Shown: positions 1 through 27,235 of the stretch, in pieces | Layout: every line of letters begins with the position of its first letter | Position numbering within the stretch: the first letter of the stretch is position 1 | Source: Macrostomum lignano | Taxonomy: Eukaryota | NCBI GenBank assembly: GCA_002269645.1 | Contig: NIVC01005051.1 | Location: 1 to 27,684, forward strand | Reading direction: 5' to 3' | DNA: 27,684 nucleotides | The notes under the pieces: generated by a model | The model's database searches: none | Told to the model about the DNA's origin: nothing | What the model saw: only the letters and a program-made list of their open reading frames with translations | Program-made: the position numbers and the translations under genes

Positions 1-290
1 GCTCGCCCGGTAGCTCTTAAGTAGCGGACGAGCTGGCAGAGATTCTCGGGCCTGAACGTCGGAGAGGTCCGGGTTTGGGCCAAGGTAGGTGAGCCTGTCC
101 TGAGTAAAGGCGAGGCATTCACAGATGAAGTGCTCCGCATCCTCGACACCGGAGAGGCAGAAGGGGCATTCCTCACTGCGGATTTTTCCAGTCACCGCCC
201 TGATGTCCCTACAGATGAGTCCAAGCAGGGCTCGCGGTAGCGGAGATAAGCTACTGGTAGTGATAATCTCCGCAAGTTTTAAACTAGGGA
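1..290 (-). mobile_element. 5'-truncated non-LTR retrotransposon, ORF2 C-terminal zinc knuckle
   Basis: Minus strand gives ..DIRAVTGKIRSEECPFCLSGVEDAEHFICEC.. (C-x2-C-x8-H-x4-C at 115-168). After a one-base frameshift it reads FRPENLCQLVRYLRATGR. It runs off the left edge. Confidence 0.75.
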
Positions 291-845
291 ATAGACAAGG
301 CGAACATTAAGAGTGTATTACAGATGGACTAATAACTTTTTAGAGCCTAGCGCCTTTTGATACATGCATATGTTGATTATTCTATGCACTGTATGGTATA
401 GCATAGTACAGCATTGAGTAGGAACTAACTATGCTGGATGAAAAGATAAAATTCCTATTGCACATCGTGAGGCAGCTTTTCCTATCGATAAAGGGAAGAA
501 AGGAAGTCAGAGAAAAATCTATTAAAAATTCCCCAGCAACTGCATCGCCACTGAGCCGGTTGCTACAGCAAACAATGAGCAGTAAATCGATTCATCAAAG
601 CCGTTCAATTATTTTGTCATTTTTTCTGCTAAAAGCAACACAGATTCTCGCCTCTAGGAGACAACAATCCATCCAAACGCATTTTGTGTCTACACTAAAA
701 TTGAATCGAATCATTTTTGCTAAAAGCTCATGCATCCATCCAGCCATCCGACACAATGGGTCCGATAACAATAGCCCGCTAGATAGCTGAAATCCAGATA
801 CAAGATCCCCATTTGTATTCCCCTTCCTTTAGCCCCATCCCTCCC

Positions 846-870
846 GTTGCCAATAGCAACCGGTAAACAA
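846..870 (+). promoter_or_regulatory. RFX X-box plus adjacent forkhead motif
   Basis: GTTGCC-AAT-AGCAAC (846-860) fits GTNRCC-N0-3-RGYAAC. GTAAACAA (863-870) is the forkhead core. The module lies about 220 bp upstream of the ATG. Confidence 0.6.
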
Positions 871-1086
871 TCAAAGCCCCGCTCCAATGTCAGCAGCCAG
901 ATTTTCTCGCCCACTCGCCCTACCAAAATCGATAAAGAGTGGCGCAATTCCGAGCCGTCATCTTCCTGTGAGGATTTGAGGATAATTTGAGACGATTTCG
1001 CGTTTTTTCTCGAAAATTATCTTCCCGTCCCGTCCTTAAGCTGATATTTGTCCTAAGTTTAAGTTTGAAAAGTTGAAGACAAGCAG

Positions 1087-2093
1087 ATGGCTTTGGAGCA
1101 GTTGCTGCAGTTTCTGCTGCTGGTGCTGGTAGCCTGCGGGAACTTTGTCGGTTTTGCAGGTGAGAGCCATTCACTCTAGGCTTTTAATGTGACTGTTCAT
1201 CACTCCTCTTCTATGCGCGTTTCTTTTGCATTTCCAGACGGCTCCCCGTATCCCTGCAAGCAGCTGCACACTGCCGGCAGCGCTATGCGCGAATTCCGAG
1301 CTAGCCCCGGTGTTGTTGCCATGGCAACCAGCGACCCGACTGACAACTGCCTGCTCGCCTGCCGGCAGATTGATTACAGGTAGGGTATTGACTAGAGCTT
1401 CTCTGGGCTATAGATTAGCAATCCGTTTTATTCCTTCATCCGTGATGGCTATAGATTAGCAATCCATTCTATTCCTTCATCCGCGATGGCTTTAGATTAG
1501 CAATCCATTCTATTCCTTCATCCGTGATGGCTATAGATTAGCAATCCATTCTATTCCTTCATCCGCGATGGCTTTAGATTAGCAATCCATTCTATTCCTT
1601 CATCAGTAATGGCTATAGATTAGCAATCCGTTTTATTCCTTCATCCGCGATGGCTATAGATTAGCAATCCGTTCCAGTTGCTTATCCATGGACTATAGAT
1701 TAGCAATCCATTCTGTTCCTTCATCCGTGTTGGCTATAGATTAGCAATCCATTCTATTCCTTCATCCGTGTTGGTTATAGATTAGCAATCCATTCTGTTC
1801 CTTCATCCGCGATGGCTATAGATTAGCAATCAACTCCGGCACCTCATCAGCACAGCAGCATCAGCTCTCTCTCTCCCCTCCGTCCAGCTTCGCCCTGTGG
1901 AACAATCTCACCTGCCAGTGCAGCAACGCCTCCGTCGCTGCCCTGCCCGACGCCGCCGCTGACTACTGCGTGCCGGGCACCTGCGAGGTCGCTGACTGGT
2001 CGGAGACTGCGGCCTGCTTCATCAACTGGACCTTTGTGGGCACCGTGTTCTCGACGCCGGTCTTCAAGACAGTCGCTATGCGGTTGTCCGGTT
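1087..2093 (+). CDS. Exons 1-3: signal peptide and WSC-like Cys module
   Basis: ATG 1087 gives MALEQLLQFLLLVLVACGNFVGFA (hydrophobic leader), then G|gtgaga. Exons 2/3 join to give NCLLACRQIDYSFALWNNLTCQCSN, matching the WSC pattern C-x3-C...Y-x-FA...C-x-C. Confidence 0.7.
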
Positions 2094-5000
2094 GTAAGTG
2101 TCCGACTGCGAGGAGCTATGAAGGGGTTGGAAATCCCAACTTAGTTCGGGATTCGAACACTGGGTTAGAACGGAAAAGTTAGAAACTAAGACGGGATTCG
2201 AATCGATCAAATAAGTACTGAGATGGGATTCGAATAGAGGAGTCTGGAGCTGAGATGAGATTCGAATAGAGGAGTCTGGAGCTGAGATGCGATTCGAATA
2301 GAAGAGTCGAGAGATGAGATGGGATTCGAATAGAAGAGTCGATAGTTGAGATAAGATTCGAATAGAATAGTCGGGAGCTGAGATGAGATTCGAATAGAGG
2401 AGTCGGGAGATGAGATGGGATTCGAATAGAGGAGTCTGGAGATGAGATGGGATTCGAATAGGGGATTCGGAAGATGAGATGGGATTCGAATAGAAGAGTC
2501 AAGAGATGAGATGGGATTCGAATAGAAGAGTCGGTAGATGAGATGGGATTTGAATAGGGGAGTCGGGAGATGAGATGAGATTCGAATAGAATAGTCGAGA
2601 GCTGAGATGAGATTCGAATAGGTGAGTCGGGAGATGAGATGGGATTCGAATAGAGGAGTCGAGAGATGAGATGGGATTCGAATAGAGGAGTCGGGAGCTG
2701 AGATGGAATTCGAATAGAAGAGTCAAGAGATGAGATGGGATTCGAATAGAAGAGTCGGTAGATGAGATGGGATTCGAATAGAACAGTCGGGAGCTGAGAT
2801 GAGATTCGAATAGAAGAGTCGGGAGCTGAGATGGGATTCGAATAGGGGAGTCGGAAGATGAGATGGGATTCGAATAGTGGAGTCTGGAGATGAGATGGGA
2901 TTCGAATAGGGGAGTCGAGAGATGAGATGGGATTCGAATAGTGGAGTCGGGAGATGAGATGGGATTCGAATAGAGGAGTCAGGAGATGAGATGGGATTCG
3001 AATAGAGGAGTCAGGAGATGAGATGGGATTCGAATAGGGGAGTTCGGGGCTATAAGATTATAAACTAAATAACTGAATTTGCTACCAACTGCTGCAGCCC
3101 CTGAAGACGCCATCACAGCCGGTGACACGGTGGACATTGAAATCGACATGAACAGTGGCGAGGCCACTTTGCTGGACCACTCGGAGTGGGCGGACTCGCA
3201 GCTGGCGATGCGGCAGCGAAACCAGGCTGGAACTGAGACCAGCGTGCCTGTCTGGGAAAACTCGCTGGGTCAGTGTTGCCAAGCTGACAGCTACAAGATA
3301 ACTACTGTAATGACTTGAAGTACAGCGGTGATCACGTGACCCATGCCCCTCCCGCAGGACAAAAAGCTCTCCTGCACGCAGAGGTGCAGCAGCCCAAATT
3401 TTACGACTCTCCGATGTCGCTGACCGCGGTGCGCCGGGTTCAGCAGCGCGTCAGTGCAGCTGGCAGCATCGAGGTCTCGGCCGGCGAGTCCACGGACGGC
3501 AAAGCCACCTGGGGCACCGAGGTGACCATCACGGCGCCGTTCCAGATGGGCTCAAACATGACGGCTCGAATTGACTTTGCGAATGGCAGGACGGTGGCCA
3601 TCGGAGGGCTCAGTGAGTGAAATTTTTATACGTTTAACCTTGGAATAGAAAATACTTGACACGGTATTTTGCAGTTCACACCCTACTGGAAGCCTATCCT
3701 ATTGCTTATTGCTCATGTTTTAAAAAAATAACTTTATGGACAAACTTAATTCTGTCTGTGGCCTAACCTTGGCTATGTACTCAGCCTGCTACACCTCGAG
3801 ACGGTCAGTATTGTCAATGGCTAGGACCCAAAGAACCCACAGTGAAATCTTTGTGGAAAATATTATGTACAGTATAAGCGACATGTTTCGCCTCGCCTCC
3901 GGCATCGTCAGGCTCTTAAAGAATTAGAAAACAGGTCGATCAGAGTCAGAAAATGTACAGTTAACTGACAGTCGATTGCACAATAAATCAGTAATTGATT
4001 GTCAGTTCATCCACCCAGTATTTCTGCAAATAACCGCCCGCCTCCTGGACCAACCTGCGATGGCAGACGCGGCTCCGGTGAACTTTCGCCAAGCGGAGAG
4101 CCAGCAGTCCTACACAGCGGACACGCGGCCAGCCGGTCTGGTTCTGCTCAACTATGACGTCAGCGTGCCGTGTACCGTCACTGGAGTGGCCTTCCATGCT
4201 AATGTGTCGGCTGGTGGCAGCTTCGATGTTCAAGTGAGCACTCGTAGCATTGCGTTCACTACCTGTGCCGCAATAGCTAAATTAGACTGATCTAAGTATG
4301 ATTTTGATTTTCCATACATCGCTTACTCAATTGCGATTTGTCGAACAGCTAAAGCCAACATTTGCTTTGAAATACAGTAGTGTGAAACTAGCATTTCCTG
4401 CTTGTCTCTACTCAGATGTGCTGTGCAAAGGGCCTGTCAACTTAAGCTCATAAAGTGGAGCCCGAGTAACCTATGTACACAAATGATCCGTCATTCTGTT
4501 CACAGTGACACCAGGAAGCTGGATTTGGCAAAAAGCGACGAATATTGGACTTGGGATGGGGGAGACACACAATGGGATAATTAGGGATTATTATGTAAAC
4601 TTGAGCGCATAAGGTGGAGTCCTTAATTATCCCCTTTCCTGTTCTCTCAACCCAAGTCCAATTTTTGTCACTTTGTTTTCAAATCCAGCTTCCTGGTGTC
4701 ACTGTAAACAGAATGACGTATCATTTGTGACATAAGCTACTCGGGCTCCACATTATGAGTTTAAGTTGACAGACAGGCCCTTTGTGATTCCACCTTGGTA
4801 AAATAAATAGCTACTTGCTTCATTTAGGGTTTTGAAGTCCAGAAGGGAGTAATTTGTCTTCTATTTGTGCAATAAAACTGAATCTAACTGTCTCATCAAC
4901 TTGTCCGCCAGGTCCTGCGGCCCCAGTGCCCCGACGGCAGCACCTACTGCTACGTGAGCAACGCCTGCTTGGCAGTCGGTCAGTCCTGCGGTCGCCAGCC

Positions 5001-11000: not shown

Positions 11001-14000
11001 TGCTCAATATCCGTCGAAACCAGTCGAAGGACATGGAGAAACGTGAGTTCTTACAACACGAGCGTAAATTATGTCGTAGAAACCTCGTGTAAGCAAAGTT
11101 TTTTTATGTACAACAAGTACAAGTTGAATACTGTGACAAAATAACATGCAGTCGCACCTGCAAGTGTCACGGTTCATCGGCTCCGCACTTAGTGGTCCGA
11201 AATTAAGAAGTCCCTGACTTTAGCATGACATAAAAGTGATCTCAGTAACACGCCCATTCAATTAAAACTGTTTTTGAAACTCCAGTGAAAGTGGCGATTC
11301 GAGATGAAAGCAGCAGCGATTGCAGCTACTTTCGGCTGGGCAACAACGCCAACTCGCAGGGCGACTCGTTTTTCTCGGAGCCGGACCCGACCTTTCCAGG
11401 CAGGACGCGGCCCTCTCAGACGGTGGTAACAACGGTAAGATTGCGCCTATCTGTTTGAAACTACAAGCTTTCATACGTCATAAGCGTCAGTTAGAACTTC
11501 GAGTTGAAGTTGTGTGTGCTGGCGAGTTCTTGCCTTCCTTGCTGAAACCAGCTGATTAGTAAAACATAATCTTGTAGACTGAAGCCCTGTATGCGTTGCA
11601 AGCTACTGTCTTTAGTCTGCTTAGCCAAATACTACGGCTTTGATGAGTAAACCATTTTATTTAAGTTTCAACATCTGAAAGCTTATCATTCATTTTTGTC
11701 TAATCATTTTTAGGTGATCAAAAGCGATCTCAATGCCTATCAGCTGGCTACTCCGGAGGAGGCGAGTCCCAGCTACTCCTACTCAATGAGCATGATGAAC
11801 GAGAACGCGCTGGAATTCGCGGTCACCGATCTTGACGACCAGTCCTGGGTTGAGATGCGCCTATTGCGCAATGTGAGCGCCAGCAAGCTCACTGATGTCT
11901 ACTTGACAACCAGACCGAGGTCTGACAGGATGGGAAAGCACGTTATCACTATCAGCAAGGGCTCGTCTCTGTTTGTCAAGGTGGAGCGCTACATCAACTA
12001 CAGAAGCCTCGCAAGTTCCGACAGTTTGCCAACGGAAGACTTCGAAATTTTGGTCTTCCTTCGAAAAGACGGCACACCGTCAGAGAGAAACTACGACCAT
12101 CTTGTGCCAGCTACCGCTGCTCAGGCCCAGGGTCGCCTGCGGTCCGCCAAGCCAGGTTGTTGATAGACGCTTGACTCAAACTACACGATAGGTCTGTGCA
12201 ACTGCACCAAAGCAGCGGATGGGAGCTACACAAACTGCCTGTACGCTGGCGAGCCGAACGGCTTATCGCTCCAGTCAGAGGCTGGTTGGGAGCTGGCCCA
12301 CTGCCAGTGCCTTGAAAACCGCTGCTTCCGACAAGGCGCCTGCGCCGCTGCTCAGGACTTGCTGCCGGATCCATGGACCTGCTTCTTTCCCAGCGATTCG
12401 CTTGGCACGTAAGCATTCAGGGGAGCCTAATTAACTAAACAGTTTTCGGGGAAAGATTGGTGTTTAGAAGAGAACACAGCTGGTGTTTAGGAGAGAACAC
12501 AACTGGCGTTTAGGAGAGAACACAGCTGGTGTTTAGGAGAGAACACAGCTGGTGTTTAGGAGAGAACACAGCTGCTGTTTAGGAGAGACGTGAGTTTTTG
12601 AGGACACAGAGCCGATTTGGGGAAGCTTGCCTCTTAAATTTGCTTGATTTGAATATTCATCTGCAACCCAACGCAGACGAGGCGCGAAACAGAAGTGGCG
12701 CTTCGGCGTGAGAATGCTGAAGATTCCCGCTAGCGGCAGAGAAAAGTTCAGCGACACCTCAATTGGCAATCCGACTGGACGGTTGAACATCGACAGAAGT
12801 CTCTATATCGAAGCTGAAGTGAAGCTGTCGTCTTACCTATCAGCCTGCAACTACGTAAATTTGAAGGACTTCCAGCTGGAGAATACGGGATTATATGTGA
12901 GTCAACTTTTATATCATGAACAAGGTGCAGTGAACCTATTGTTGTGAAGGTGTTGCAACATTTTTTCAATTGCCAACCACTTCGCATCAGGAGGGTCGGT
13001 GCTCCACGCCCACCATGCTGCACTGCTACTCGCGCCACTTGACCTCATTCATGGCTAATTTCTACGTGCCACCCATCGAGTTTGACGCGGCCGACTCATC
13101 CTGGCTGCGGCTCGACACCAACCCCATCGCATTCGCCCTGTGCATCGCCGTTGTCTGCCTTTACCTCATCGTAATAGTCTGGGCCAGGCGCAAGGACGAG
13201 CGCGACCTCATCCAAGTGGGCATTGTGCCGCTCATCGACAATTACCCGGCAGATCCGTACCGGTAAATTGCTTGTTGGGGCTGGTTGCTATGATCAAAAT
13301 TTGTAACTTGAAGAGCAGTGCCGGATTAAAAAGTTCTCAGTTTGGAGATTTTACGAGTATTCCAGGCAAAGTAGCAATTGTTATCCTTTTTGAACTGGGA
13401 TGAAATGTAACTGTGGTTATAGTTCACGATTATTTATCTTGACTCTGCCTTGATATTGTAGATTGTCAAGAAATATTATATTTTAAACTTTGGGAGAAAA
13501 TGATCACAACTCACATAACATAAGAGAACCCATAAAACGCAGTGACGGAGGCATCCTGCTGTACAACGCGGAGATGCGGATGTTGACAGTTGGCGGTTGG
13601 ACTCGTGCTCAGCTGCAAATTAGACCCATCATCATGCACCTTCACAACTGGAAGATCCACTTGTCGCCCAACCTAGTCAGAAAGTCCTGCCTGTTGCTCA
13701 CCTTCCAGGGTCCGCCCTTGACCCATCGACACGTGGACTGTCTGCCGTGCAATGCAGCCAACGGGGGCTGAATATTTACGCTCAATCGCGCAGCGAAGCT
13801 TCCCATCTAACGCTCCCTGGCGAGCTTAGGGCTGCATATTTTGCTGTTTGCGTCACTGCTAGGAATCAGAAAAAACCCACAATTCAGCTCCAGCTCGTAA
13901 GGTCTCTATAGTTGACAAAAAAACTGTGATTACTGAAACACCTGCTCCGCAGGTACGAGCTCACCTTCTGGACTGGCAATCAGCGAGGTGCGGGCACCAC

Positions 14001-17000: not shown

Positions 17001-20000
17001 CTACAGGGGCGGCGGCTTCGTGGCCAATCCGAGCATCCGCACCATCCGGCTGGACCGCTACAGCGGACCGGAGGCGCTGCTGTACGCTCTGCTGGACCTG
17101 GCCAGCCTGCTGCTGGTCATCGCCTTCATCGTCCGGGAGGCTCGGGCTCTGTGGAGGAAGCGGTGGGCCTATTTCCAGGTAAATTGGAAGCTGTTGTACA
17201 GGTATGGAATACAGTTTGCGGATCTGGGATGGTTTCAGGTAGCTTGCTTGTAGATGTATGACATTGGATAGTGTATGGGATGGAATAGAGTAGATGGGGA
17301 TGGGATAGAGTAGATGGGGATGGGATAGAGTAGATGGGGATGGGATAGAGTAGATGGGGATGGGATAGAGTAGATGGGATGGGATAGAGTAGATAGGGAT
17401 AGGGATAGAGTAGATGGGGATGGGATAGAGTAGATGGGGATGGGATAGAGTAGATAGGGATGGGATAGAGTAGATGGGGATGGGATAGAGTAGATGGGGA
17501 TGGGATAGAGTAGATGGGGATGGGATAGAGTAGATGGGGATGGGATAGAGTAGATGGGGATGGGATAGAGTAGATGGGGATGGGATAGAGTAGATGGGGA
17601 TGGGATAGAGTAGATGGGGATGGGATAGAGTAGATGGGGATGGGATAGAGTAAATGGGAATGAGGATAGAGTAGATGGGGATGGGATAGAGTAGATGGGG
17701 ATGGGATAGAGTAGATGGGGATGGGATAGAGTAGATGGGGATGGGATAGAGTAGATGGGAAGGAGGATAGGATAGATGGGGATGGGATAGAGTAGATGGG
17801 GATGGGATAGAGTAGATAGGGATGGGATAGAGTAGATGGGGATGGGATAGAGTAGATGGGGATGGGATAGAGTAGATGGGGATGGGATAGAGTAGATGGG
17901 GATGGGATAGAGTAGATGGGGATGGGATAGAGTAGATGGGGATGGGATAGAGTAGATGGGGATGGGATAGAGTAGATGGGGATGGGATAGAGTAGATGGG
18001 GATGGGATAGAGTAAATGGGAATGAGGATAGAGTAGATGGGGATGGGATAGAGTAGATGGGGATGGGATAGAGTAGATGGGGATGGGATAGAGTAGATAG
18101 GGATGGGATAGAGTAGATGGGGATGGGATAGAGTAGATGGGAAGGAGGATAGGATAGATGGGGATGGGATAGAGTAGATGGGGATGGGATAGATTTGTGT
18201 TGAGTCTAAAATAAACATCGCTTTGGTGAAGGTCCATATATGTACCTCGAAAACTTCACTAAAATGTTCCAAATTAACAATGCCTTTCACAAAAATGACA
18301 CCAGGACCAGTTCAAGTGCCTAGACATCTGCCTGCTGCTGTTCTGCACAGCCGAGGTGGTTCTCTACCTGGTGAAGATTGCTGTGCAGCAGGCTTTGGCC
18401 AGCTTCATGCAGGCCAACTCGGACAAGTTTATCGACTTCCAGTGGCTGATTGTGTACGATGAGGTACGGAGTTTGGCCTGAGCTACCTGAGTTTATAGAG
18501 ATATGAGAGCATCTACTTGAGTTTGTAGACATATGAGAGCATCTACTTGAGTTTGTAGACATATGAGAGCATCTACTTGAGTTTATAGACATATGAGAAC
18601 ATCTACTTGAGTTTGTAGACATATGAGAGCATCTACTTGAGCTTATAGACATATGAGAGCATCTACTTGAGTTTGTAGACATATGAGAGCATCTACTTGA
18701 GCTTATAGACATATGAGAGCATCTACTTGAGTTTGTAGACATATGAGAGCATCTACTTGAGTTTGTAGACATGAGAACATCAACTTGAGTTTATGGAGAT
18801 AGGTGTATCTACCTGAGATTACTGCCAACTCCGAACCCGCAGATCAACCAGGTGTTCATCGGCATCATTGTGTTCCTCTTCACCATTCGGTTCCTTCGCC
18901 TGCTCAACTTCAACCGTCGAGGAGTTCTGCTGCTAGAGGTGCTGAAAACCGCGACTAAGCCGCTGCTTACTTTCGGCCTGATGGCCGGCCTTCTGTTTGT
19001 AGCGTTCGTGCTGGCCGGCCACCTGCTGTTCGCCTGCTCGATTCGGGAGTTTCGAAGCTTCACCGCGGCTGCGGAGGCGCTGAGCATCCTGGCTACTAGT
19101 GAGGCTCACTGGCAGATGGAGCTTGAGGGTGGGGCTACTAGTGAGGCTCACTGGCAGATGGGGCTTAAGGGGGGGGGGCTACTAGTGAGGCTCACTGGCA
19201 GATGGGGCTCAGGGGGGGGGCTACTAGTGAGGCTCACTGGCAGATGGGGCTCAGGGGGGGGGGCTACTAGTGAGGCTCACTGGCAGATGGGGCTCAGGGG
19301 GGGGGCTACTAGTGAGGCTCACTGGCAGATGGGGCTCAGGGGGGGGGCTACTAGTGAGGCTCACTGGCAGATGGGGCTCAGGGGGGGGGCTACTAGTGAG
19401 GCTCACTGGCAGATGGGGCTCAGGGGGGGCTACTAGTGAGGCTCACTGGCAGATGGGGCTCAGGGGGGGGCTACTAGTGAGGCTCACTGGCAGATGGGGC
19501 TCAGGGGGGGCTACTAGTGAGGCTCACTGGCAGATGGGGCTTAAGGGGGGGGGCTACTAGTGAGGCTCACTGGCAGATGGGGCTCAGGGGGGGGCTACTA
19601 GTGAGGCTCACTGGCAGATGGGCTCAGGGGGGGGGGCTACTAGTGAGGCTCATGCACTGGCAGATGGAGCTCAGGGGGGGGGCTACTAGTGAGGCTCACT
19701 GGCAGATGGGCTCAGGGGGGGGCTACTAGTGAGGCTCATGCACTGGCAGATGGAGCTCAGGGGGGCTACTAACAAGGCTCATTAATTTAGGCCAACAGTC
19801 ACAAGAGGGCCAGACTATGAGGACAAGAACCTCACCCCTTTGCCTGTGGAAAGCTCTGTCAATGATCAATTGTATAAATATTATAAGCACCATTTACTAC
19901 AAGTAAACGTGAACTGCGGGCACCTTGACTCGAGAAGCTTCCTGACACAGCGCTCACAGGGTGTACAGCGGCCCTGGCTAGACCCCAAAGTTACTTTGGC

Positions 20001-21204
20001 TGCGTGCGGAATCGAACCCGGGTTCTTTAACGTAGCAGTCGGCCGCGTTAACTACTGATCTGCTCTAGTAGTGCGAACGAGCATCACTGTTATTTTTTGT
20101 GTTAGATCAAGTTTACTGCCCTACCCCCAACTGCAGACAGCATGGAGTTCAAAAGCCTGTTCTCAGACGGAGGCGGCCTGGCCATGCTGTTCTTCTTTGC
20201 CTTTATGCTGTTCGTGTGCCTCACCCTGCTGAACGTGTTCGTTGCCGTCATGATCAACTCGTTACGCTGCGTCCGCCAGAACTGGCTCGCCGACCCGGAG
20301 AAGTACGAACTAGTTGAGCACTTTGCCAGCCGCATCCGCTGGCTGCTCGGCTGCTCGGTCAGGCACGGCCACCTGCGCCACATTGATGCCGACTATCATT
20401 ATCGCAAGGGTGAGCAGTGGTCATTGAGCACTGCTGGTGGCTCGGGTGCACTTCAGATTTATTAAATATAGACTTTTTATGTAGCCTCATTCATCATCTA
20501 ACAGATGACTCAGGTAGACTTTCAAACTTGCTGTAGTTTTCTCAGCTCACATTTTCTTGGGAGTCTTAAAGTCTCTTCATTGATCTTTAAGTGCTTCGGG
20601 TAGGTTTTCAGGTAGTCCTTTCTTGATCTTTAAGGGTAGACTTTTAAGTAGTCTCTTAATTGATTTTTAAGGGTAGATTTTAAGGTAGCCTCTTCATTGA
20701 TATTCTTGGGTAGACTTTCAGGTAGCCTCTTCATTGTTACCCTGGGTTAGACTTTCAGGTAGCTTCGTTCATCTTCTGGTAGAATTTCATGTAGCCATTT
20801 CATTCGTCTTCGAGGGTACACTTTCAGGTTGCCTTTCATTGATATTCTGAAGTAGACTTTCAGGTAGCGTCTTCATTGATACTCTGGGGTAGACTTTCAG
20901 GTAGCCTCTTGATTTACATGTATCTTGTTTCATCAGATTATCTGGTAGCCTCTTCTCCATTTCTGATCTTCAGCTGCCATCGAAGATGCACAGGCTGAAG
21001 GTAAACAATCCCTACACTGCATGCATACATGCACTATATCCTCCATCTATTTACCAAATTGCAGGCAGCGAGCAGGTAGAGGAGGACTTCGAGGAGCTGA
21101 ACCTGCGCATCCTGCAACTGGAAGTCATCCTTGGGACGGCCAACGCGCAGTGGAGACACCGCACCGAGGATGACGCGGACCCGAGGCGGAAGATCTACAT
21201 GTGA
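1087..21204 (+). CDS. PKD1-like: Polycystin-1 family (PKD1/PKD1L-like) 11-TM receptor-channel, 26 exons, about 3,610 aa after frame correction
   Basis: Exons inferred from GT-AG junctions with consistent phases: 1087-1159, 1238-1379, 1888-2093, 3098-3268, 3358-3612, 4019-4233, 4912-5587, 5662-5855, 5948-8687, 8828-9087, 9504-9527, 9618-9940, 10036-11042, 11286-11434, 11714-12408, 12677-12896, 12991-13262, 13953-14282, 14563-15650, 15835-16332, 16742-17178, 18305-18463 (alternative acceptor 18311), 18843-19098, 20137-20409, 20974-21000, 21065-21204. Sum 10,830 nt plus 9 missing bases gives 3,613 codons. Domain order PKD-REJ-GPS-TM-PLAT-TM-polycystin channel is diagnostic of the family. Confidence 0.93.
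1315..1328. promoter_or_regulatory. Perfect palindromic X-box inside coding exon 2
   Basis: GTTGCCATGGCAAC, encoding V-A-M-A-T. Confidence 0.55.
1405..1830. repeat. 41-bp minisatellite, about 10 copies, intron 2
   Basis: Unit GGCTATAGATTAGCAATCCATTCTATTCCTTCATCCGTGAT with substitutions and one shortened variant near 1670-1690. Confidence 0.97.
2190..3045. repeat. About 30-bp purine-rich minisatellite, about 28 copies, intron 3
   Basis: Unit GATGAGATGGGATTCGAATAGAGGAGTCGG/A. Confidence 0.97.
3873..3918 (-). ncRNA. Minimal type I hammerhead ribozyme motif (Penelope-like-element type)
   Basis: Minus strand reads TAAGAGC-CTGACGA-T-GCC-GGAGGCGA-GGC-GAAA-CATGTC-GCTTATA. It has the CUGANGA and GAAA cores, a 3-bp stem II, a palindromic ACAUGU stem III, a GUC cleavage triplet and 6/7 paired stem I. 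Confidence 0.75.
4426..4784. mobile_element. Foldback / long-TIR MITE, about 360 bp, intron 6
   Basis: Arms 4426-4587 and 4620-4784 are imperfect reverse complements, including a perfect 26-bp match (4502-4527 vs 4680-4705). Spacer is about 32 nt. No clear TSD. Confidence 0.85.
5662..7700 (+). CDS. PKD (Ig-like) repeats, exons 8-9
   Basis: Repeated WDFGDG-type and HxY/F..PG.Y.V.V...N.VS motifs: YTWNFTDG..TNYIS; ILDFGDGT..HPYTKRGTYNATAIVENQVS; ADFGDGH..HNFTVPGNYTVTVRLQNRVGS; CQWDFGDSS..HSYNRPGNYSISVNVSNAIS. Confidence 0.9.
7700..10200 (+). CDS. REJ domain, exons 9-13
   Basis: LNLPAFSLRAMRTYRVTF; IGVQ|CVSNC; VTVTPSQGVSVLDKFQIECTGASDSDEPLTY; LPPG...VTDANQAS..VIVTP. These are typical REJ motifs. 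Confidence 0.8.
9150..9434 (+). mobile_element. tRNA-derived SINE, CORE-like central segment, intron 10
   Basis: A-box-like TAGTGGTCAGAGC 9168-9180 and B-box GTTCGATTCC 9208-9217. TGTATCCTTGAGCGAGACACTTAAC (9244-9268) resembles the CORE-SINE domain (GTGACCTTGGGCAAGTCACTTAAC). AT-rich tail; boundaries approximate. Confidence 0.7.
12458..12588. repeat. 23-bp minisatellite, about 5.7 copies, intron 15
   Basis: Unit TGGTGTTTAGGAGAGAACACAGC. Confidence 0.97.
12677..13262 (+). CDS. GPS motif with HL|T autoproteolysis site and TM1, exons 16-17
   Basis: SACNY...ENTGLY|EGRCSTPTMLHCYSRHLTSFMANFYVPP (His-Leu-Thr at 13036-13044), followed by hydrophobic IAFALCIAVVCLYLIVIVWARRKD. Confidence 0.92.
13545..13800 (+). 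mobile_element. Degenerate RTE-like non-LTR retrotransposon fragment, intron 17
   Basis: GILLYNAEMRMLT resembles the RTE post-RT motif ILLYGAETWTLT, and LHNWKIHLSPNLV resembles the following I.W..H..N motif. Extent uncertain. Confidence 0.45.
13953..14282 (+). CDS. PLAT/LH2 domain, exon 18
   Basis: YELTFWTGNQRGAGTTANVCFILTGE...GSVDTF...LGRLSHLRIWHDNSGSDPCWYL...YHFICNRWLS(V)RRDDG. Confidence 0.95.
14563..21204 (+). CDS. Membrane region, TOP/polycystin cation-channel domain and coiled-coil tail, exons 19-26
   Basis: DGHLWLSVVTRPARSRFSRVQR; PRLRQLRL; WSYTSALDSLG..GLLATYSGGGY; WLDRLSRGVVLELLLYNP; IRFLRLLNFN; LLNVFVAVMINS; tail EEDFEELNLRILQLE; stop TGA 21202-21204; AATAAA at 21527-21532. Confidence 0.93.
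17275..18190. repeat. 20-bp purine-rich minisatellite, about 45 copies, intron 21
   Basis: Unit GGGGATGGGATAGAGTAGAT, very homogeneous. Confidence 0.98.
18488..18800. repeat. 30-bp minisatellite, about 10 copies, intron 22
   Basis: Unit TGAGTTTGTAGACATATGAGAGCATCTACT. Confidence 0.97.
19092..19785. repeat. 40-46-bp minisatellite beginning at the exon 23 donor, 16 intact units plus a degenerate one
   Basis: Unit GCTACTAGTGAGGCTCACTGGCAGATGGGGCTCA(G)n. Unit length varies mainly through the poly-G run. Confidence 0.97.
19850..20070 (-). mobile_element. tRNA-derived SINE-like element (second family), intron 23
   Basis: Minus strand has an A-box-like CAGATCAGTAGTTAACGCG (about 20044-20062) and B-box GTTCGATTCC (20008-20017). 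A 25-nt body segment (19951-19975) matches 16521-16545 at 22/25. Confidence 0.55.
20500..20950. repeat. Degenerate 37-bp minisatellite, intron 24
   Basis: GGTAGAC recurs at 37-bp spacing (20635, 20672, 20709, 20746). Consensus is close to GGGTAGACTTTCAGGTAGCCTCTTCATTGATATTCTT. Confidence 0.85.
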
Positions 21205-21644: not shown

Positions 21645-21900
21645 CACGCGGCCGCCGTCCACCTCACTCCACCGCGACCCTCCTCACACCGAGGCCACCC
21701 TTCTCACTCCACCGCTGCCCACCTTACACTGCCTCCGCCCACCCCAATCCGCCGCCACCCTCCTCACTCCGCCGCCCACCTCACTCCGCCACCCACCTCA
21801 CTCCGCCGCCCACCTCACTCCGCCGCCCACCTCACTCCGCCACCCACCTCACTCCGCCGCCCACCTCACTCCGCCGCCACCAACCTCACTCCGCCACCCA
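21645..21900. repeat. C-rich low-complexity tandem repeat, about 21-bp unit
   Basis: Iterated CCACCTCACTCCGCCGCC / CCACCTCACTCCGCCACC. Confidence 0.9.
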
Positions 21901-23152
21901 TGTCAAAAAAAATTTAAACCAGACTATATAAAGTGAATAACTCGACAATGAATACTGGTAATAATCGATAAGATATACGGCACACAATATTAGCAGTATA
22001 ATATTATATTTAAGGATCAGTAAACACTGATAATAAAAATAAAAAGCTGCACACCAATAAAAGCACAGACTAGCTGATGAAACCTGATCACCAAGTAAAA
22101 ACGCCAAAAACAAGAACAGGAAAAATCATGCAATTGGGTTAAAAAAAGACAAAAAGCCAGACTAGACTAGACTAGACCGCACTGTGAGCTAGGGGGGGGG
22201 CTGGGCTTAGCTATGAATAGATGCGGAAGACGACATCCAAATACGCGCGTCAAAACAAATATGAGTATATACTACTGCCAAGGAGTAAACTGCGCACAAT
22301 AAGCTAGAAATTTGAAGAGTAACAATATAATATTCGGCATAGTATTTAATCTAATATTGCAACAAAAAGATGAAAGCTTATACAAGGATAAACAACAAAT
22401 TTAAAGGAAGCATTCGGGGACAAGATTGAATATCGCCATCACCGCGTTTAGCAATACAACAAGACGCTGGAGAAAATTTCACACGCAGAAGTTCAAATAA
22501 AAAACTCTGCGTCTTCTAAAACTTCAATTAAAAAAAATGCACTATACAATATAGAAACAAAAGGTTTGCTCCAATTGTATAAAAATCAAGGAGGACAACA
22601 ATACACAGCGATTAAAAAATGATCAACAACACAATACAAAAACATTTCTAGTATTTGTTTTGGTTTTGCAAGTGTACGTTTATAGTTCTGATGTTAAAAT
22701 TAGATATTACTGCGTACATTTGAGTTAGTCTATTGAGGGTAAATCCTCATACCATGTTACTTACACTGTGTCTATTTTTAGCAACACGATGCGCAATTTT
22801 GCGCATCTATTTTTAGTAACAAGCGATGTACATCTGTTTAACTATACACACAGTGATAATTCAGCCAATCAAGTCTGAGCTAGTGTCTATGGTCAAGAAT
22901 TGTATTAGACCAAGCCAGCTGTTAGGGCTAAAAGATAATCAAGTAGAGAATTTCAAAGCAAGTATTCTGGCAACAGAAACTTCATCGCTGACAAGTGCTG
23001 ATTTTTAACAAAATTATCCACTTGATTGGCTGTGTGATAAATCCTAGACTTCTAGTATATTGTAGTATTGTCTATCTTCTTATCAATTATTTCACAAATT
23101 GTTGTGTCGACCTCTCACTATCGGACCTCCTTGACAGCTCAGATCAGAGTCG

Positions 23153-26100
23153 CTAGTCGCTATCCTCGTCATCATCATCGACTCCAACGCCGCTGGCGCC
23201 GCCGCCTCGGCCGCTCTGTCCGTCAGATTTAATCAGCCGCTCCATGCTGACCTCTCGCCTATCACCGCCGTCCATAGGACCCCGGCGAGCGTGATAGCGG
23301 CTGATGAACATGGCCAGGCACAGGGCAAATATGAATATGGCCAGGCCGTGCCAAGCGAATATCACAGTGGCCAACATGATGCTGTCGTGTTCAGCTTTTG
23401 TTAATTGGAATTGGCGAAGCCACGGTACAGGCGGGTAGAGCATTGCGCCTACCTGCGATGTGATTAAAATTAATTAATAGCTTTCTGTGTCGCCAAACTC
23501 CGGCATACAAGACTTCACAATTAGCAATCCTGTCCGCTCAGGGTTTATTTCTTCTCTCATCTCCTCTTTCCTCTTAGGGGTAAAGTTCAGTATTAAAGCT
23601 CTATAGCATTAAAGCTCTGTGTATGTAGCATTCTAAAGTAACAGTTTTCACACAAGGGTTGATCGTGCAAATCCATGTAATACAGATTAATGATCAATGT
23701 AAAAATCAAGGACGACTTAAGTAGAAGGACGGGAAACATCGTTTCTTAGAAAATTTTTGAAGGCACTTTTTCCCGAAAAAATACACTACGGAGATAGGAA
23801 ATTTTCATTTTTTGAGCACAAAAATTGCTATTACTTTTGATAGGAGGCAGATCCAGTGTTCATCTTTTGATATATTGTGCCTTTTTTATTGCTCTATCGA
23901 TATTTATAAAGCTTTTCGTTCAGAAAATTTTACGTATTATTTTAGTATCTGTGGGTGCAGCCCATATCCAGGGAATCCTATTGGCTCGCTTGAATTGGCT
24001 ATTGCCTACTGGTAATGAGTAGCGTTGATTTTGACTACTGATCTTTTTGAACCAAATATATGTCCTGTTCGGTCGGTAGTATCAATAGATTGGTTCTAGC
24101 AAAATACTCTCCTTTTTCTCTCCTCTTTCCAAGAATCCTACGAATCCTATGAAAACACTTTTTGCCTCCCTTACCCTTCCAGCCAGCTGGCAGTCGCTTT
24201 GCTATTCAGGACCCTTGGACTGGTCATTGCGGTATTTGGGTGTTGTCTTATTTGTATTTCAAACTGACTCGTGGTGGTAGCCTCCGATTCTTTTTAACGC
24301 GTGTTCTTGGTTGTGGGCCACGTCGAGGAAATGAGTTTCGGCGTGCGTATTTTTGCCTACGACGCTTTGCAACACAATGCTTTGGTTTGCATGGGTGCTT
24401 GCGCCTGTGCAAACCGGCTTTAGTGATCAGCCCGGCCCTTGCGGTCTCTGTGCATCTGTGTGGCCCCCACCCGGAGTCACCGCTCTGGTCCTACGCCGAT
24501 GGAAGTGGCGGCTTGCGCCTGCTGACTGGGAGGCACCTGGACTGCTTCCTCCGTGACAAGTTTGCCGCAGCCGGCGTTCGACCAGGATCTTACTCCGCGC
24601 ACAGTCTGCGACGAGGAGGAGCTATCTGGGCGTCTGTGCTAGGCCTCCCAGTGTCTGATATCATGCACATTGGTGACTGGAGAAGTGAGGCTGTGCAGCG
24701 TTATCTCCCCCAGTTTCACCAGACAGCGGAGGCTGCTGTGACTTTTGCCGGTGGTGTCTCTGCTTTGTTTTAGCTCCCAGCCTTCTGCTTTTGATCGCTT
24801 GCTCGCTTTGGGTTTGGAGGTCGCTTATTCGCTGTGCGCCTCCCGCGCGTTGCTCGCCAATTGTCTCAATGTGTCTCTTTGTGTCTGGCTGGTCACTAAG
24901 TGTTGCCTTTATTCTTGTAATGCAGAAATACATCGAAAAGTTTTTTGGCCAACTTGGTTGATTGAAATTAAGCTCTTTTCTTCCGTTCTTTGTGGGTGCG
25001 GTGCAGTGTAGACTGTATAGCTAGAATTCCCGTAGAATACCCTACCATTTGGTTTGGTACCTTAATATTTAATTTGTAATTGGAAAATGTGCAATTGAAA
25101 ATTGGGGTATGTAATATTTTTACTGCCGTAGAGCGCATATGCGTCACTTAGAATTAATGAAAATCGCATTTCGCATTTACAACAACTCTATTTTGCCTAC
25201 TTGAGTTAGTAGAGAGTTTAGCGCTAACACAACGACTCTTGGACGACTGGTCCTGCCTCAAAAGTCGCCTCTACTACGTGGCATTTCAGTCGTTTGAGTT
25301 GTTGAAAATTCACAAGAGTCACACCAGGGTCGCTAGAGTCACTAGTGAGTTGATTGCAATGACTCTTTGCGATTCTTGTCACGGTATCCTTTTTCAACGG
25401 GCTGTGCAGTACCCCCAGTTTTGCCCACAGTTACTAAAATAACCAGATGGGCCACTCAGGCATGGATACTTAGTGGAAAGGCGCGGTTGGGGGGTTTAAG
25501 CTGGGGGGATAAGAGCCAATAAATGAGCCTTGGCTTTAAAAATACATTAAAATGCTTCTGTTTAACTTACCACTGAACTGAAAGTAGCCCAAATGTGCTG
25601 AGTGGCCCATCTGGTTATTCCAGTATCTGTGGTTTTGCCTGGCTAATTTGGGTAGATCGATAACAAACGCGATCAGCAGTCTCGTACCTGGATAAACCAG
25701 CTGCCCTGTAGGGCGGTGAAAAAGCAGCGGGCCAGGGCTGGCAGCGGAGACCGGGGCCTGCGCAATTCTAGCAGCAGTGCCAGCACGCAGCACCAGACTG
25801 TGTACACCAGCAGGGTGTGCAGGACCACGTCAATCTGAGATAAATTATAGATGGATTCAAGTTCTCACTCTGTTCAGATTCCTTTCGCGGAGATGGAAAT
25901 TATTAATTGGCTGTATGAAGTCTTCTATCTGCTTAGTGTAGTCTGACATTGTCAAATTTACGGTTTCTGAAGGCTTAGTGTAGTCTGACATTGTCAAATT
26001 TACGGTTTCTGAAGGCTTAGTGTAGTCTGACACAGTGGCGTAGCCAGGGGGGGGGGGCGGGGCTGAGGCCCCCCCCAATCGCCTGGGGGGTGGGGTTGGG

Positions 26101-27235
26101 CGCGGCGGATACCAAAAACCAGGAGGCAATTGAGTTCCGCGGCGCCAAAATGAGTGCCTGTGGCGCCAAATGAGTGCCTGCGGCGCCAAAATGAGTGCCT
26201 GTGACGCCAAATGAGTGCCTGCGGCGCCAAAATGAGTGCCTGTGGCGCCAAATGAGTGCCTGCGGCGCCAAAATGAGTGCCTGTGACGCCAAATGAGTGC
26301 CTGCGGCGCCAAAACGAGTGCCTGTGACGCCAAATGAGTGCCTGCGGCGCCAAAATGAGTGCCTGTGGCGCCAAATGGGTGCCTGCGGCGCCAAAATGAG
26401 CACCTGCGGCGCCAAAAGTGGCAATGGCATAAGGCATGGCCAGCCAGACCAACCCGGCCCCGCCCCAATTGAAATTCCTGGCTACGCCACTGGTCTGACA
26501 TTGTCAAATTTATGGTTTATGAAGGCTTAAGTGTAGTCTGACATTGTCAAATTCATGGTTTATGAAGGCCTAAGTGTACTCTGACATTGTCAAATTTACG
26601 GTTTCTGAAGGCTTAAGTGTAGTCTGACATTGTCAAATTTACGGTTTCTGAAGGCTTAAGTGTAGTCTGACATTGTCAAATTTACGGTTTCTGAAGGCTT
26701 AAGTGTAGTCTGACATTGTCAAATTTATGGTTTATGAAGTTCATGTTTCTTGGTGTCAGGACACGAACACTCATAGTGTTTAAAACTACAAAATGCCCGA
26801 CATCTAACCTGAGTGCGGCCGTGCAGATGGAAGGTGAACAGGATGGCCTCTACGCAGAAGGCCATCAGGCAGACCGCATAGTCTGTGCCAGGCGGCAGCG
26901 GGGCTTTGCAATGCGCCAGGATGTCAACTAAGCCCGACATGGCAAAGCAGGCGTACATGGTGGCGTGCTGCCCATTGCCAAAGAAGGTGAATTGGCGATT
27001 TTCAAATGCAGTTACGAGCTCGCTGTAAAGCCGATGCTGCAGCAGATCATTTTTATAAAGCCCTCTAAGGGCAGACGGACGCAGCAGCAGCAGCAGGGAT
27101 AAACTACAGTGGACCGGTAGGCCGGGCCCCGCCTGTACTTGGCCTGTAGTAACGGCTGAGCACGGAGTAGAGCCACCACAGCGCAAATAGCAGGAAGAAT
27201 GCGCCAGGCAGCAGGTGGCCTAAGAATGTGCCCAT
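23153..27235 (-). CDS. TMEM45: TMEM45-like (DUF716 family) multipass membrane protein, 3 exons, about 291 aa
   Basis: Exons 27235-26809, 25834-25688 and 23452-23153, all phase 0 after adding two bases in exon 1. Family motifs: MGTFLGHLLPGAFFLLFALWW; NGQHATMY..F..SGLVD; VEAILFTFHLHGR; IDVVLHTLL; LQGSWFIQ|VGAMLYPP; HDSIMLATVIFAWH; acidic C-terminus. Confidence 0.9.
24162..24773 (+). mobile_element. Tyrosine recombinase fragment of a DIRS/Ngaro-type retrotransposon, in TMEM45 intron 2
   Basis: YSAHSLRRGGA (H-x-x-R, 24600-24611), GDW (24672-24680) and QRY (Tyr 24702-24704) match the C-terminal catalytic motifs of DIRS-group recombinases. No RT or RNase H nearby. Confidence 0.8.
25442..25615. mobile_element. 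TA-flanked MITE (Tc1/mariner-type signature), 174 bp
   Basis: 18-bp perfect TIR ACCAGATGGGCCACTCAG / CTGAGTGGCCCATCTGGT, flanked by TA on both sides (25440-41 and 25616-17). Confidence 0.75.
25930..26735. repeat. 42-43-bp minisatellite split by a MITE, TMEM45 intron 1
   Basis: Unit TGTAGTCTGACATTGTCAAATTTACGGTTTCTGAAGGCTTA(A)G at about 25930-26032 and 26493-26735. Confidence 0.95.
26033..26492. mobile_element. hAT-type non-autonomous transposon (460 bp) with internal 20/21-bp tandem repeats
   Basis: 16-bp perfect TIR CAGTGGCGTAGCCAGG / CCTGGCTACGCCACTG and 8-bp TSD GTCTGACA (26025-26032, 26493-26500). Internal (GCGGCGCCAAAATGAGTGCCT/GTGGCGCCAAATGAGTGCCT)n at about 26138-26415. Confidence 0.92.

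Follow-up and report, generated by a model that had tools for sequence, protein, structure and literature searches.

The closest described relatives of the motif reported here are the minimal type I hammerhead ribozymes of Penelope-like elements (PLEs). In these hammerheads helix I is short and open, with 4-5 bp, and helix II is long, with 6-8 bp; further hallmarks emerged from outside the search descriptor, among them an additional nucleotide separating A9 from G10.1, a G10.1-C11.1 pair and the palindromic form of helix III (Cervera & De la Pena 2014, PMC4209133). Most minimal motifs are single copies that probably derive from truncated PLEs (PMC4209133), more than 6000 type I motifs, all but 1508 of them minimal, have been reported in Acropora millepora (PMC7229834), and truncated and inverted arrangements have been described for PLEs (PMC8557442). 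The kind is already well known, with thousands of motifs per PLE-bearing animal genome, mostly as single truncated copies, and one more copy matters little by itself. Here we describe such a motif in a 27,684-nt stretch of Macrostomum lignano DNA (NCBI GenBank assembly GCA_002269645.1, contig NIVC01005051.1, positions 1 to 27,684 of the forward strand; hereafter the window), where it lies on the minus strand within an intron of a polycystin-1-like gene. The motif is genuine and complete, a minimal hammerhead of the Penelope type, and its likely identity is that of a solitary, probably silent relic of a retroelement that carried such a hammerhead, sitting antisense in the intron.

A second described system bears on the locus more narrowly. 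In the Poseidon element PAc of Anolis carolinensis the hammerhead core lies at nt -6 to +1 and the open reading frame (ORF) starts where stem II begins (Frangieh et al. 2024, PMC11167929). As shown below, the motif in the window shares with PAc a start codon that is embedded in the ribozyme core.

Architecture and genomic setting of the motif

Read directly along the minus strand from 3918 to 3873, the motif is UAAGAGC-CUGACGA-U-GCCGGAGGCGAGGC-GAA-ACAUGU-C-GCUUAUA. Its parts are as follows.

3873..3918, minus strand: complete minimal type I hammerhead motif, by direct reading; the sole match to our descriptor in the window
3912..3918, minus strand: helix I 5' arm UAAGAGC, pairing with 3879-3873
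3905..3911, minus strand: catalytic core C3-A9, CUGACGA, an exact match to CUGANGA
3904, minus strand: extra unpaired U between A9 and G10.1, by direct reading
3890..3903, minus strand: helix II of 3 bp, GCC (3903-3901) with GGC (3892-3890), closing the 8-nt loop GGAGGCGA (3900-3893)
3881..3889, minus strand: G12-A13-A14 as GAA (3889-3887), then the palindromic helix III ACAUGU (3886-3881; A15.1...U16.1), by direct reading
3873..3880, minus strand: C17 (3880) and the helix I 3' arm GCUUAUA (3879-3873), by direct reading

The original prediction held that every hammerhead core element stands in order on the minus strand, and direct reading bears this out, with all elements seen in type I order. 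The positions conserved in the core of minimal hammerheads (C3-U-G-A-N-G-A9, G12-A-A14, A15.1...U16.1 and H17) are occupied by CUGACGA, GAA, A...U and C17, respectively. Helix I is short and open: outward from the core run four contiguous pairs (C-G, G-C, A-U and G.U), followed by an A/A mismatch and two further pairs, so that 6 of its 7 positions are paired. The first pair of helix II is G10.1-C11.1 (G3903 with C3890). The reverse complement of ACAUGU (3886-3881) is ACAUGU again and, because a 2-nt loop is impossible, this helix III palindrome requires a second copy to pair with, in a double hammerhead. The predicted cleavage position lies between 3880 and 3879, after C17 of a GUC site; the same position had been named before, and it agrees with the coordinates of the motif.

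The placement of the motif, antisense within an intron of a polycystin gene, was likewise upheld. The intron and its neighbourhood can be summarised in a single feature.

3613..4018, plus strand: 406-nt host intron of the polycystin-1-like gene, with GTGAGT donor and CAG acceptor; the motif lies antisense within it

The intron runs from its GTGAGT donor, whose first base is 3613, to its CAG acceptor, whose last base is 4018, and across it the flanking frames are joined in phase 1 with no intervening stop codon. GC content is 55-68% in the exons as against 33-50% in the intron, and on the plus strand the successive exons of the host gene encode PKD, PLAT, Polycystin_dom and PKD_channel domains. 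The sense pre-mRNA contains just the hammerhead's complement and is hence unaffected by the motif. When the 640-aa PKD exon was used to look for homologues, no close relative emerged.

Two further structures lie in or near this intron. A hairpin at 3963-4007, 45 nt from the hammerhead, has 15-nt arms (AACTGACAGTCGATT/AATTGATTGTCAGTT) that are 87% complementary around a 15-nt loop, and its sole Rfam match was a weak one to mir-192 (E = 3), far under the gathering score. Past the next exon, a near-continuous long inverted repeat spans 4434-4772, with arm pairs at 4434-4476/4730-4772, 4478-4534/4673-4729 and 4532-4563/4643-4674 and complementarities of 81-91%; it has the look of a foldback element or a miniature inverted-repeat transposable element.

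Kinship with Penelope-like hammerheads

Set against the PLE minimal hammerheads of PMC4209133, the motif has much in common with them. Both are type I with an open helix I (here without a defined loop 1), both have a CUGANGA...GAAA...UH core with an unpaired nucleotide and a G10.1-C11.1 pair, and in both helix III is cut down to a short palindrome that is pairable only between two copies. Three of the four hallmarks that emerged from that work are thus present in the window (the extra U, the G10.1-C11.1 pair and the palindromic helix III). The PLE motifs are, moreover, mostly dispersed single copies, and the motif in the window is likewise solitary. It differs from them in its 3-bp helix II, in having no pseudo-long terminal repeat (pseudo-LTR) and no ORF for reverse transcriptase (RT) with a GIY-YIG endonuclease (EN) nearby, and in being predicted to misfold.

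We also scanned metagenome contigs for relatives with the pattern CTGANGATGC-N(3-18)-GCGAAACATGTC. Seven loci were recovered (L002-L008), all in animal DNA and mostly insect-like, and six of them are independent. In five of these six, helix II has 4-6 bp and covaries between loci, for example by C-G to A-U and C-G to U-A replacements. On this evidence, natural sequences with this core are nearly always real hammerheads. The helix II of the window motif is shorter than the 4-6 bp of these natural copies. One locus, L005, holds two inverted hammerheads about 100 nt apart, at 3567-3596 on the minus strand and 3663-3692 on the plus strand, with the same tail of about 62 nt after each and with helices II that differ by the compensatory changes C-G to A-U and C-G to U.G. 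The pair matches the inverted, truncated PLE arrangement of PMC8557442 and shows that copies of only about 120 nt exist. A single match in a viral contig (L001) was set aside as chance, since it lies inside phage-like coding sequence and has neither helix I nor helix II; it illustrates the look of noise for this pattern.

The original prediction had proposed an Infernal search with the Rfam hammerhead models as a check. Run over the whole window at gathering score and over 3700-4100 at E <= 10, the hammerhead families (RF00163, RF00008 and RF02275-7) gave no hammerhead, and all Rfam matches were noise (FTX_4 and mir-192). The window motif therefore has the catalytic core and the type I helix order in common with Hammerhead_1 (RF00163) and the other hammerhead families, but differs from them in finding no match at gathering score or at E <= 10. 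As a control, all seven natural minimal copies (L002-L008) were likewise missed by the Rfam hammerhead models at E <= 10 and, because of this, the negative result says little. The minimal variant class lies outside the coverage of the hammerhead models of Rfam release 15, and because these models miss the whole variant, annotation pipelines under-report the minimal class.

How often such a motif should arise by chance was estimated with a descriptor consisting of CUGANGA, a bulge of 0-1 nt, a helix II of at least 3 bp that begins with G10.1...C11.1, GAAA, 0-6 nt, U and H, with helix I scored afterwards. On both strands of the window this descriptor matched at this site only. A loose-pattern match at 12717-12749 lacks C11.1 and is hence not a hammerhead. 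In 100 Mb of random first-order-Markov sequence with the dinucleotide composition of the window there were 54 matches to the core and helix II and 5 matches to the core, helix II and a palindromic helix III; 2 of these 5 had a weaker helix I, and none in the 100 Mb had a helix I as good as that of the window motif. The analytic probability of such a helix I is about 0.006. Extrapolation gives a chance rate of about 3e-4 per Mb of single strand, which equals about 2e-5 per window or about 0.6 per Gb genome, and as the descriptor was composed after the motif had been seen, these rates hold as orders of magnitude only. They are far below the thousands of real copies published per PLE-bearing genome. 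A chance origin of the motif is unlikely.

The corresponding alternative for the locus as a whole, namely that an intronic sequence without retroelement ancestry happens to fit a relaxed descriptor, is accordingly one that we consider improbable. In its favour are the helix II of just 3 bp, a predicted fold that is not the hammerhead, the lack of an Rfam match, the lack of a second copy, PLE sequence or repeat family in the window, the post hoc descriptor, and a rate that is nonzero genome-wide (the figure of about 0.6 per Gb is for the full feature set and rises to a few per Gb when the quality of helix I is left aside). Against it stand the very low expectation per window, the joint occurrence of the bulged nucleotide, the G10.1-C11.1 pair, a 6-nt palindromic helix III, the GUC site and a helix I paired at 6 of 7 positions, the finding that five of the six independent metagenome loci with the same core are true hammerheads, and the thousands of real copies in PLE-bearing genomes.

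With the motif taken as a retroelement relic, its descent from a PLE in particular can be weighed, and a series of results weighs against that descent. Helix II, with 3 bp and an 8-nt loop, falls short of the 6-8 bp of the PLE type. A crude six-frame motif search of the window found no relevant RT or GIY-YIG sequence, no tandem array was found near the motif in 3400-4400, and no second or degenerate hammerhead copy was found in the 27.7 kb with mismatch-tolerant half-motifs and the full descriptor. When the intron and its flanks were compared with the rest of the window and with the fetched metagenome loci, similarity was confined to the hammerhead core. A 44-aa version of the ORF that opens within the core (below) shared words with none of 5.8 billion proteins, and the Rfam hammerhead models found no match in 3700-4100 (401 nt) at E <= 10, a point of little weight. 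Within the window and the fetched loci there was, then, neither a direct or inverted repeat around an RT and GIY-YIG ORF nor homology of the flanks, as a PLE terminal repeat would have. The original prediction had called the motif a solo remnant of a Penelope-like terminal repeat; of this, the membership in the minimal type I class with three of the four hallmarks stands, and the derivation of this particular copy from a PLE terminal repeat is plausible but unproven. Two further searches added little: no tRNA-like sequence was found in the window, and when literature text was searched for the motif's 3' half, primer sequences alone came back.

Two features that overlap or adjoin the motif could have been traces of a parent element, the ORF within it and a short direct repeat around it.

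3789..3905, minus strand: ORF of 38 codons and a stop, MPEARRNMSLILYIIFSTKISLWVLWVLAIDNTDRLEV*, opened by the AUG of A9-U-G10.1 (codons 3905-3792, stop 3791-3789)
3865..3873, plus strand: left copy of the 9-nt direct repeat ATGTACAGT, abutting the end of helix I; possible target-site duplication, weakly supported
3953..3961, plus strand: right copy of the 9-nt direct repeat ATGTACAGT; possible target-site duplication, weakly supported

The ORF arises because A9, the extra U and G10.1 together read AUG. In both the window motif and PAc, the Anolis Poseidon element, the ribozyme core thus holds an embedded start codon (A9-U-G). The ORF that begins at this AUG has 846 codons and encodes RT/EN in PAc (CDS 1..2541), whereas in the window it has 38 codons without a homologue, and in the natural metagenome copies the equivalent AUG opens 3-16 codons only. 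The cut falls after nt 29 of the ORF in PAc as against a predicted nt 26 in the window, and cleavage of PAc has been observed experimentally and needs its own protein. The encoded peptide, MPEARRNMSLILYIIFSTKISLWVLWVLAIDNTDRLEV, is hydrophobic and had no Pfam match. An open run of 38 codons has a chance of about 0.1 in this composition by our own calculation. We considered the ORF as the N-terminus of a PLE protein and rejected this on the missing Pfam match and the missing homologue among the 5.8 billion proteins; the ORF is probably incidental and not a real coding remnant.

The two copies of ATGTACAGT enclose 79 nt, the motif among them. Shuffled sequence had a flanking repeat of 9 nt or more in 122 of 5000 cases (2.4%), and an extended self-alignment was not above chance, with 27 of 200 shuffles scoring as high. 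Read as a target-site duplication, the repeat would also make the element end 6 nt past the cut site, which misfits the known PLE 3' 'tail'. We regard the target-site duplication as a weak lead.

A small insert of this size would also suit a source other than an autonomous PLE: a monomer that strayed from a non-LTR retrozyme or from some other small non-autonomous hammerhead repeat (like a short interspersed element or a satellite). Metazoan non-LTR retrozymes (De la Pena & Cervera 2020, PMC7229834; Li et al. 2026, bioRxiv 10.64898/2026.07.22.740005) are, like the window motif, short, non-coding and type I; solitary monomers of them occur, they are kin to PLE pseudo-LTRs, from which they have been proposed to derive, and the lack of a coding remnant in the window would agree with them, as would the 79 nt within the 9-nt repeat. 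Their hammerheads, however, are of the canonical form (6 bp in helix I, 4 bp in helix II and contacts between loop 1 and loop 2), and they form tandem arrays of 170-400 nt units, in contrast to the minimal PLE type of the window with its bulged nucleotide and open helix I and with no array near it. Retrozymes are also reportedly excluded from introns (bioRxiv 10.64898/2026.07.22.740005), whereas the window motif is intronic. On these grounds such a source seems unlikely to us.

For the relic of an element with a Penelope-type minimal hammerhead, we envisage the following course. The source would most likely be a severely 5'-truncated PLE copy, or else a short non-autonomous element moved by the PLE machinery, which would have inserted antisense into the 406-nt intron of the polycystin-1-like gene. 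The motif would have had its place in a pseudo-LTR of the parent element. A lone copy would be unable to close the 6-nt ACAUGU helix III, but two copies, carried on one multimeric transcript or on two transcripts, would pair by the palindrome into a double hammerhead in which each core would cut the partner strand after C17; in PAc, the only element tested, the element's own protein is needed for this. Lacking a partner, with a 3-bp helix II and a competing hairpin, the window copy would most likely be catalytically silent. Understood in this manner, the motif would mark the intron as the site of a retroelement insertion and suggests the presence of PLE-type elements in the source genome.

Predicted folding and activity

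Thermodynamic prediction puts the hammerhead well away from the preferred structure of the RNA. As a monomer, the hammerhead fold comes to -4.9 kcal/mol as against -13.0 kcal/mol for the minimum-energy fold (about 8 worse) and, as a dimer, the double hammerhead comes to -16.4 kcal/mol as against a minimum of -30.8 kcal/mol (about 14 worse). In the minimum-energy fold AGGCGA, which comprises the helix II 3' arm and G12, pairs with UCGCUU, which comprises C17 and part of the helix I 3' arm. In the natural copies L002, L005 (plus-strand copy) and L007, the hammerhead shape is itself the minimum-energy fold.

Experiments on related motifs point the same way. Single minimal motifs show no detectable cleavage in vitro, and their dimers cleave weakly (PMC4209133). 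The PAc hammerhead cleaves only with its own protein, and its cleavage is not needed for insertion in vitro (PMC11167929). Because helix II has only 3 bp, a competing fold is predicted, there is no partner copy and single minimal motifs are inactive, we consider the copy in the window to be probably inactive. The further proposal of the original prediction, that the motif could cleave antisense transcripts across the locus, finds no support in view of the competing fold, which is better by 8-14 kcal/mol, the inactivity of single minimal motifs and the protein that PAc needs.

A functional regulatory ribozyme that cleaves an antisense polycystin-1-like transcript, in cis or paired with a second RNA, is highly improbable: the core is intact, the GUC site is present, helix I is good and five CpGs are kept in 46 nt, so that the copy is not visibly eroded, yet the obligatory dimer of helix III lacks a partner copy, activity is absent from single minimal motifs and weak in dimers, PAc depends on PLE protein, and the competing fold is the more stable one by the margin given above. 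We see a slim chance that the copy is instead the tip of an undescribed family with a short helix II, or a live element that, once transcribed antisense and joined by the RNA of a second copy or aided in trans by PLE protein, would cut an antisense polycystin-1-like transcript. The probably silent relic of a retroelement thus remains our preferred reading of the locus.

Other features of the window

Minisatellite arrays with periods of 17-43 nt, several of them longer than 500 nt, crowd the non-coding parts of the locus.

1322-1892: minisatellite array
2059-3158: minisatellite array
12435-12611: minisatellite array
17156-18158: minisatellite array
18423-18832: minisatellite array
19084-19766: minisatellite array
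20598-20919: minisatellite array
21646-21922: minisatellite array
25932-26782: minisatellite array

Further along, the C-terminal part (…HSLRRGGAIWAS…GDWRSEAVQRYL…) of a 203-aa ORF on the plus strand (24162-24773) looks, on visual inspection, like the catalytic end of a tyrosine recombinase of the Crypton/DIRS type, a likeness that is unconfirmed. The ORF had no Pfam match, and its PDB matches were limited to sub-threshold Kunitz-like ones at the N-terminus. Downstream of the polycystin gene, two minus-strand ORFs (23153-23443 and 26725-27186) resemble exons of a neighbouring membrane-protein gene, and one of the two has a weak match to DUF716 (TMEM45-like; E = 0.04), under the cut-off. Near the 3' end of the window lies a 35-nt inverted repeat, with arms at 25425-25459 and 25598-25632 that are 91% complementary and 138 nt apart.

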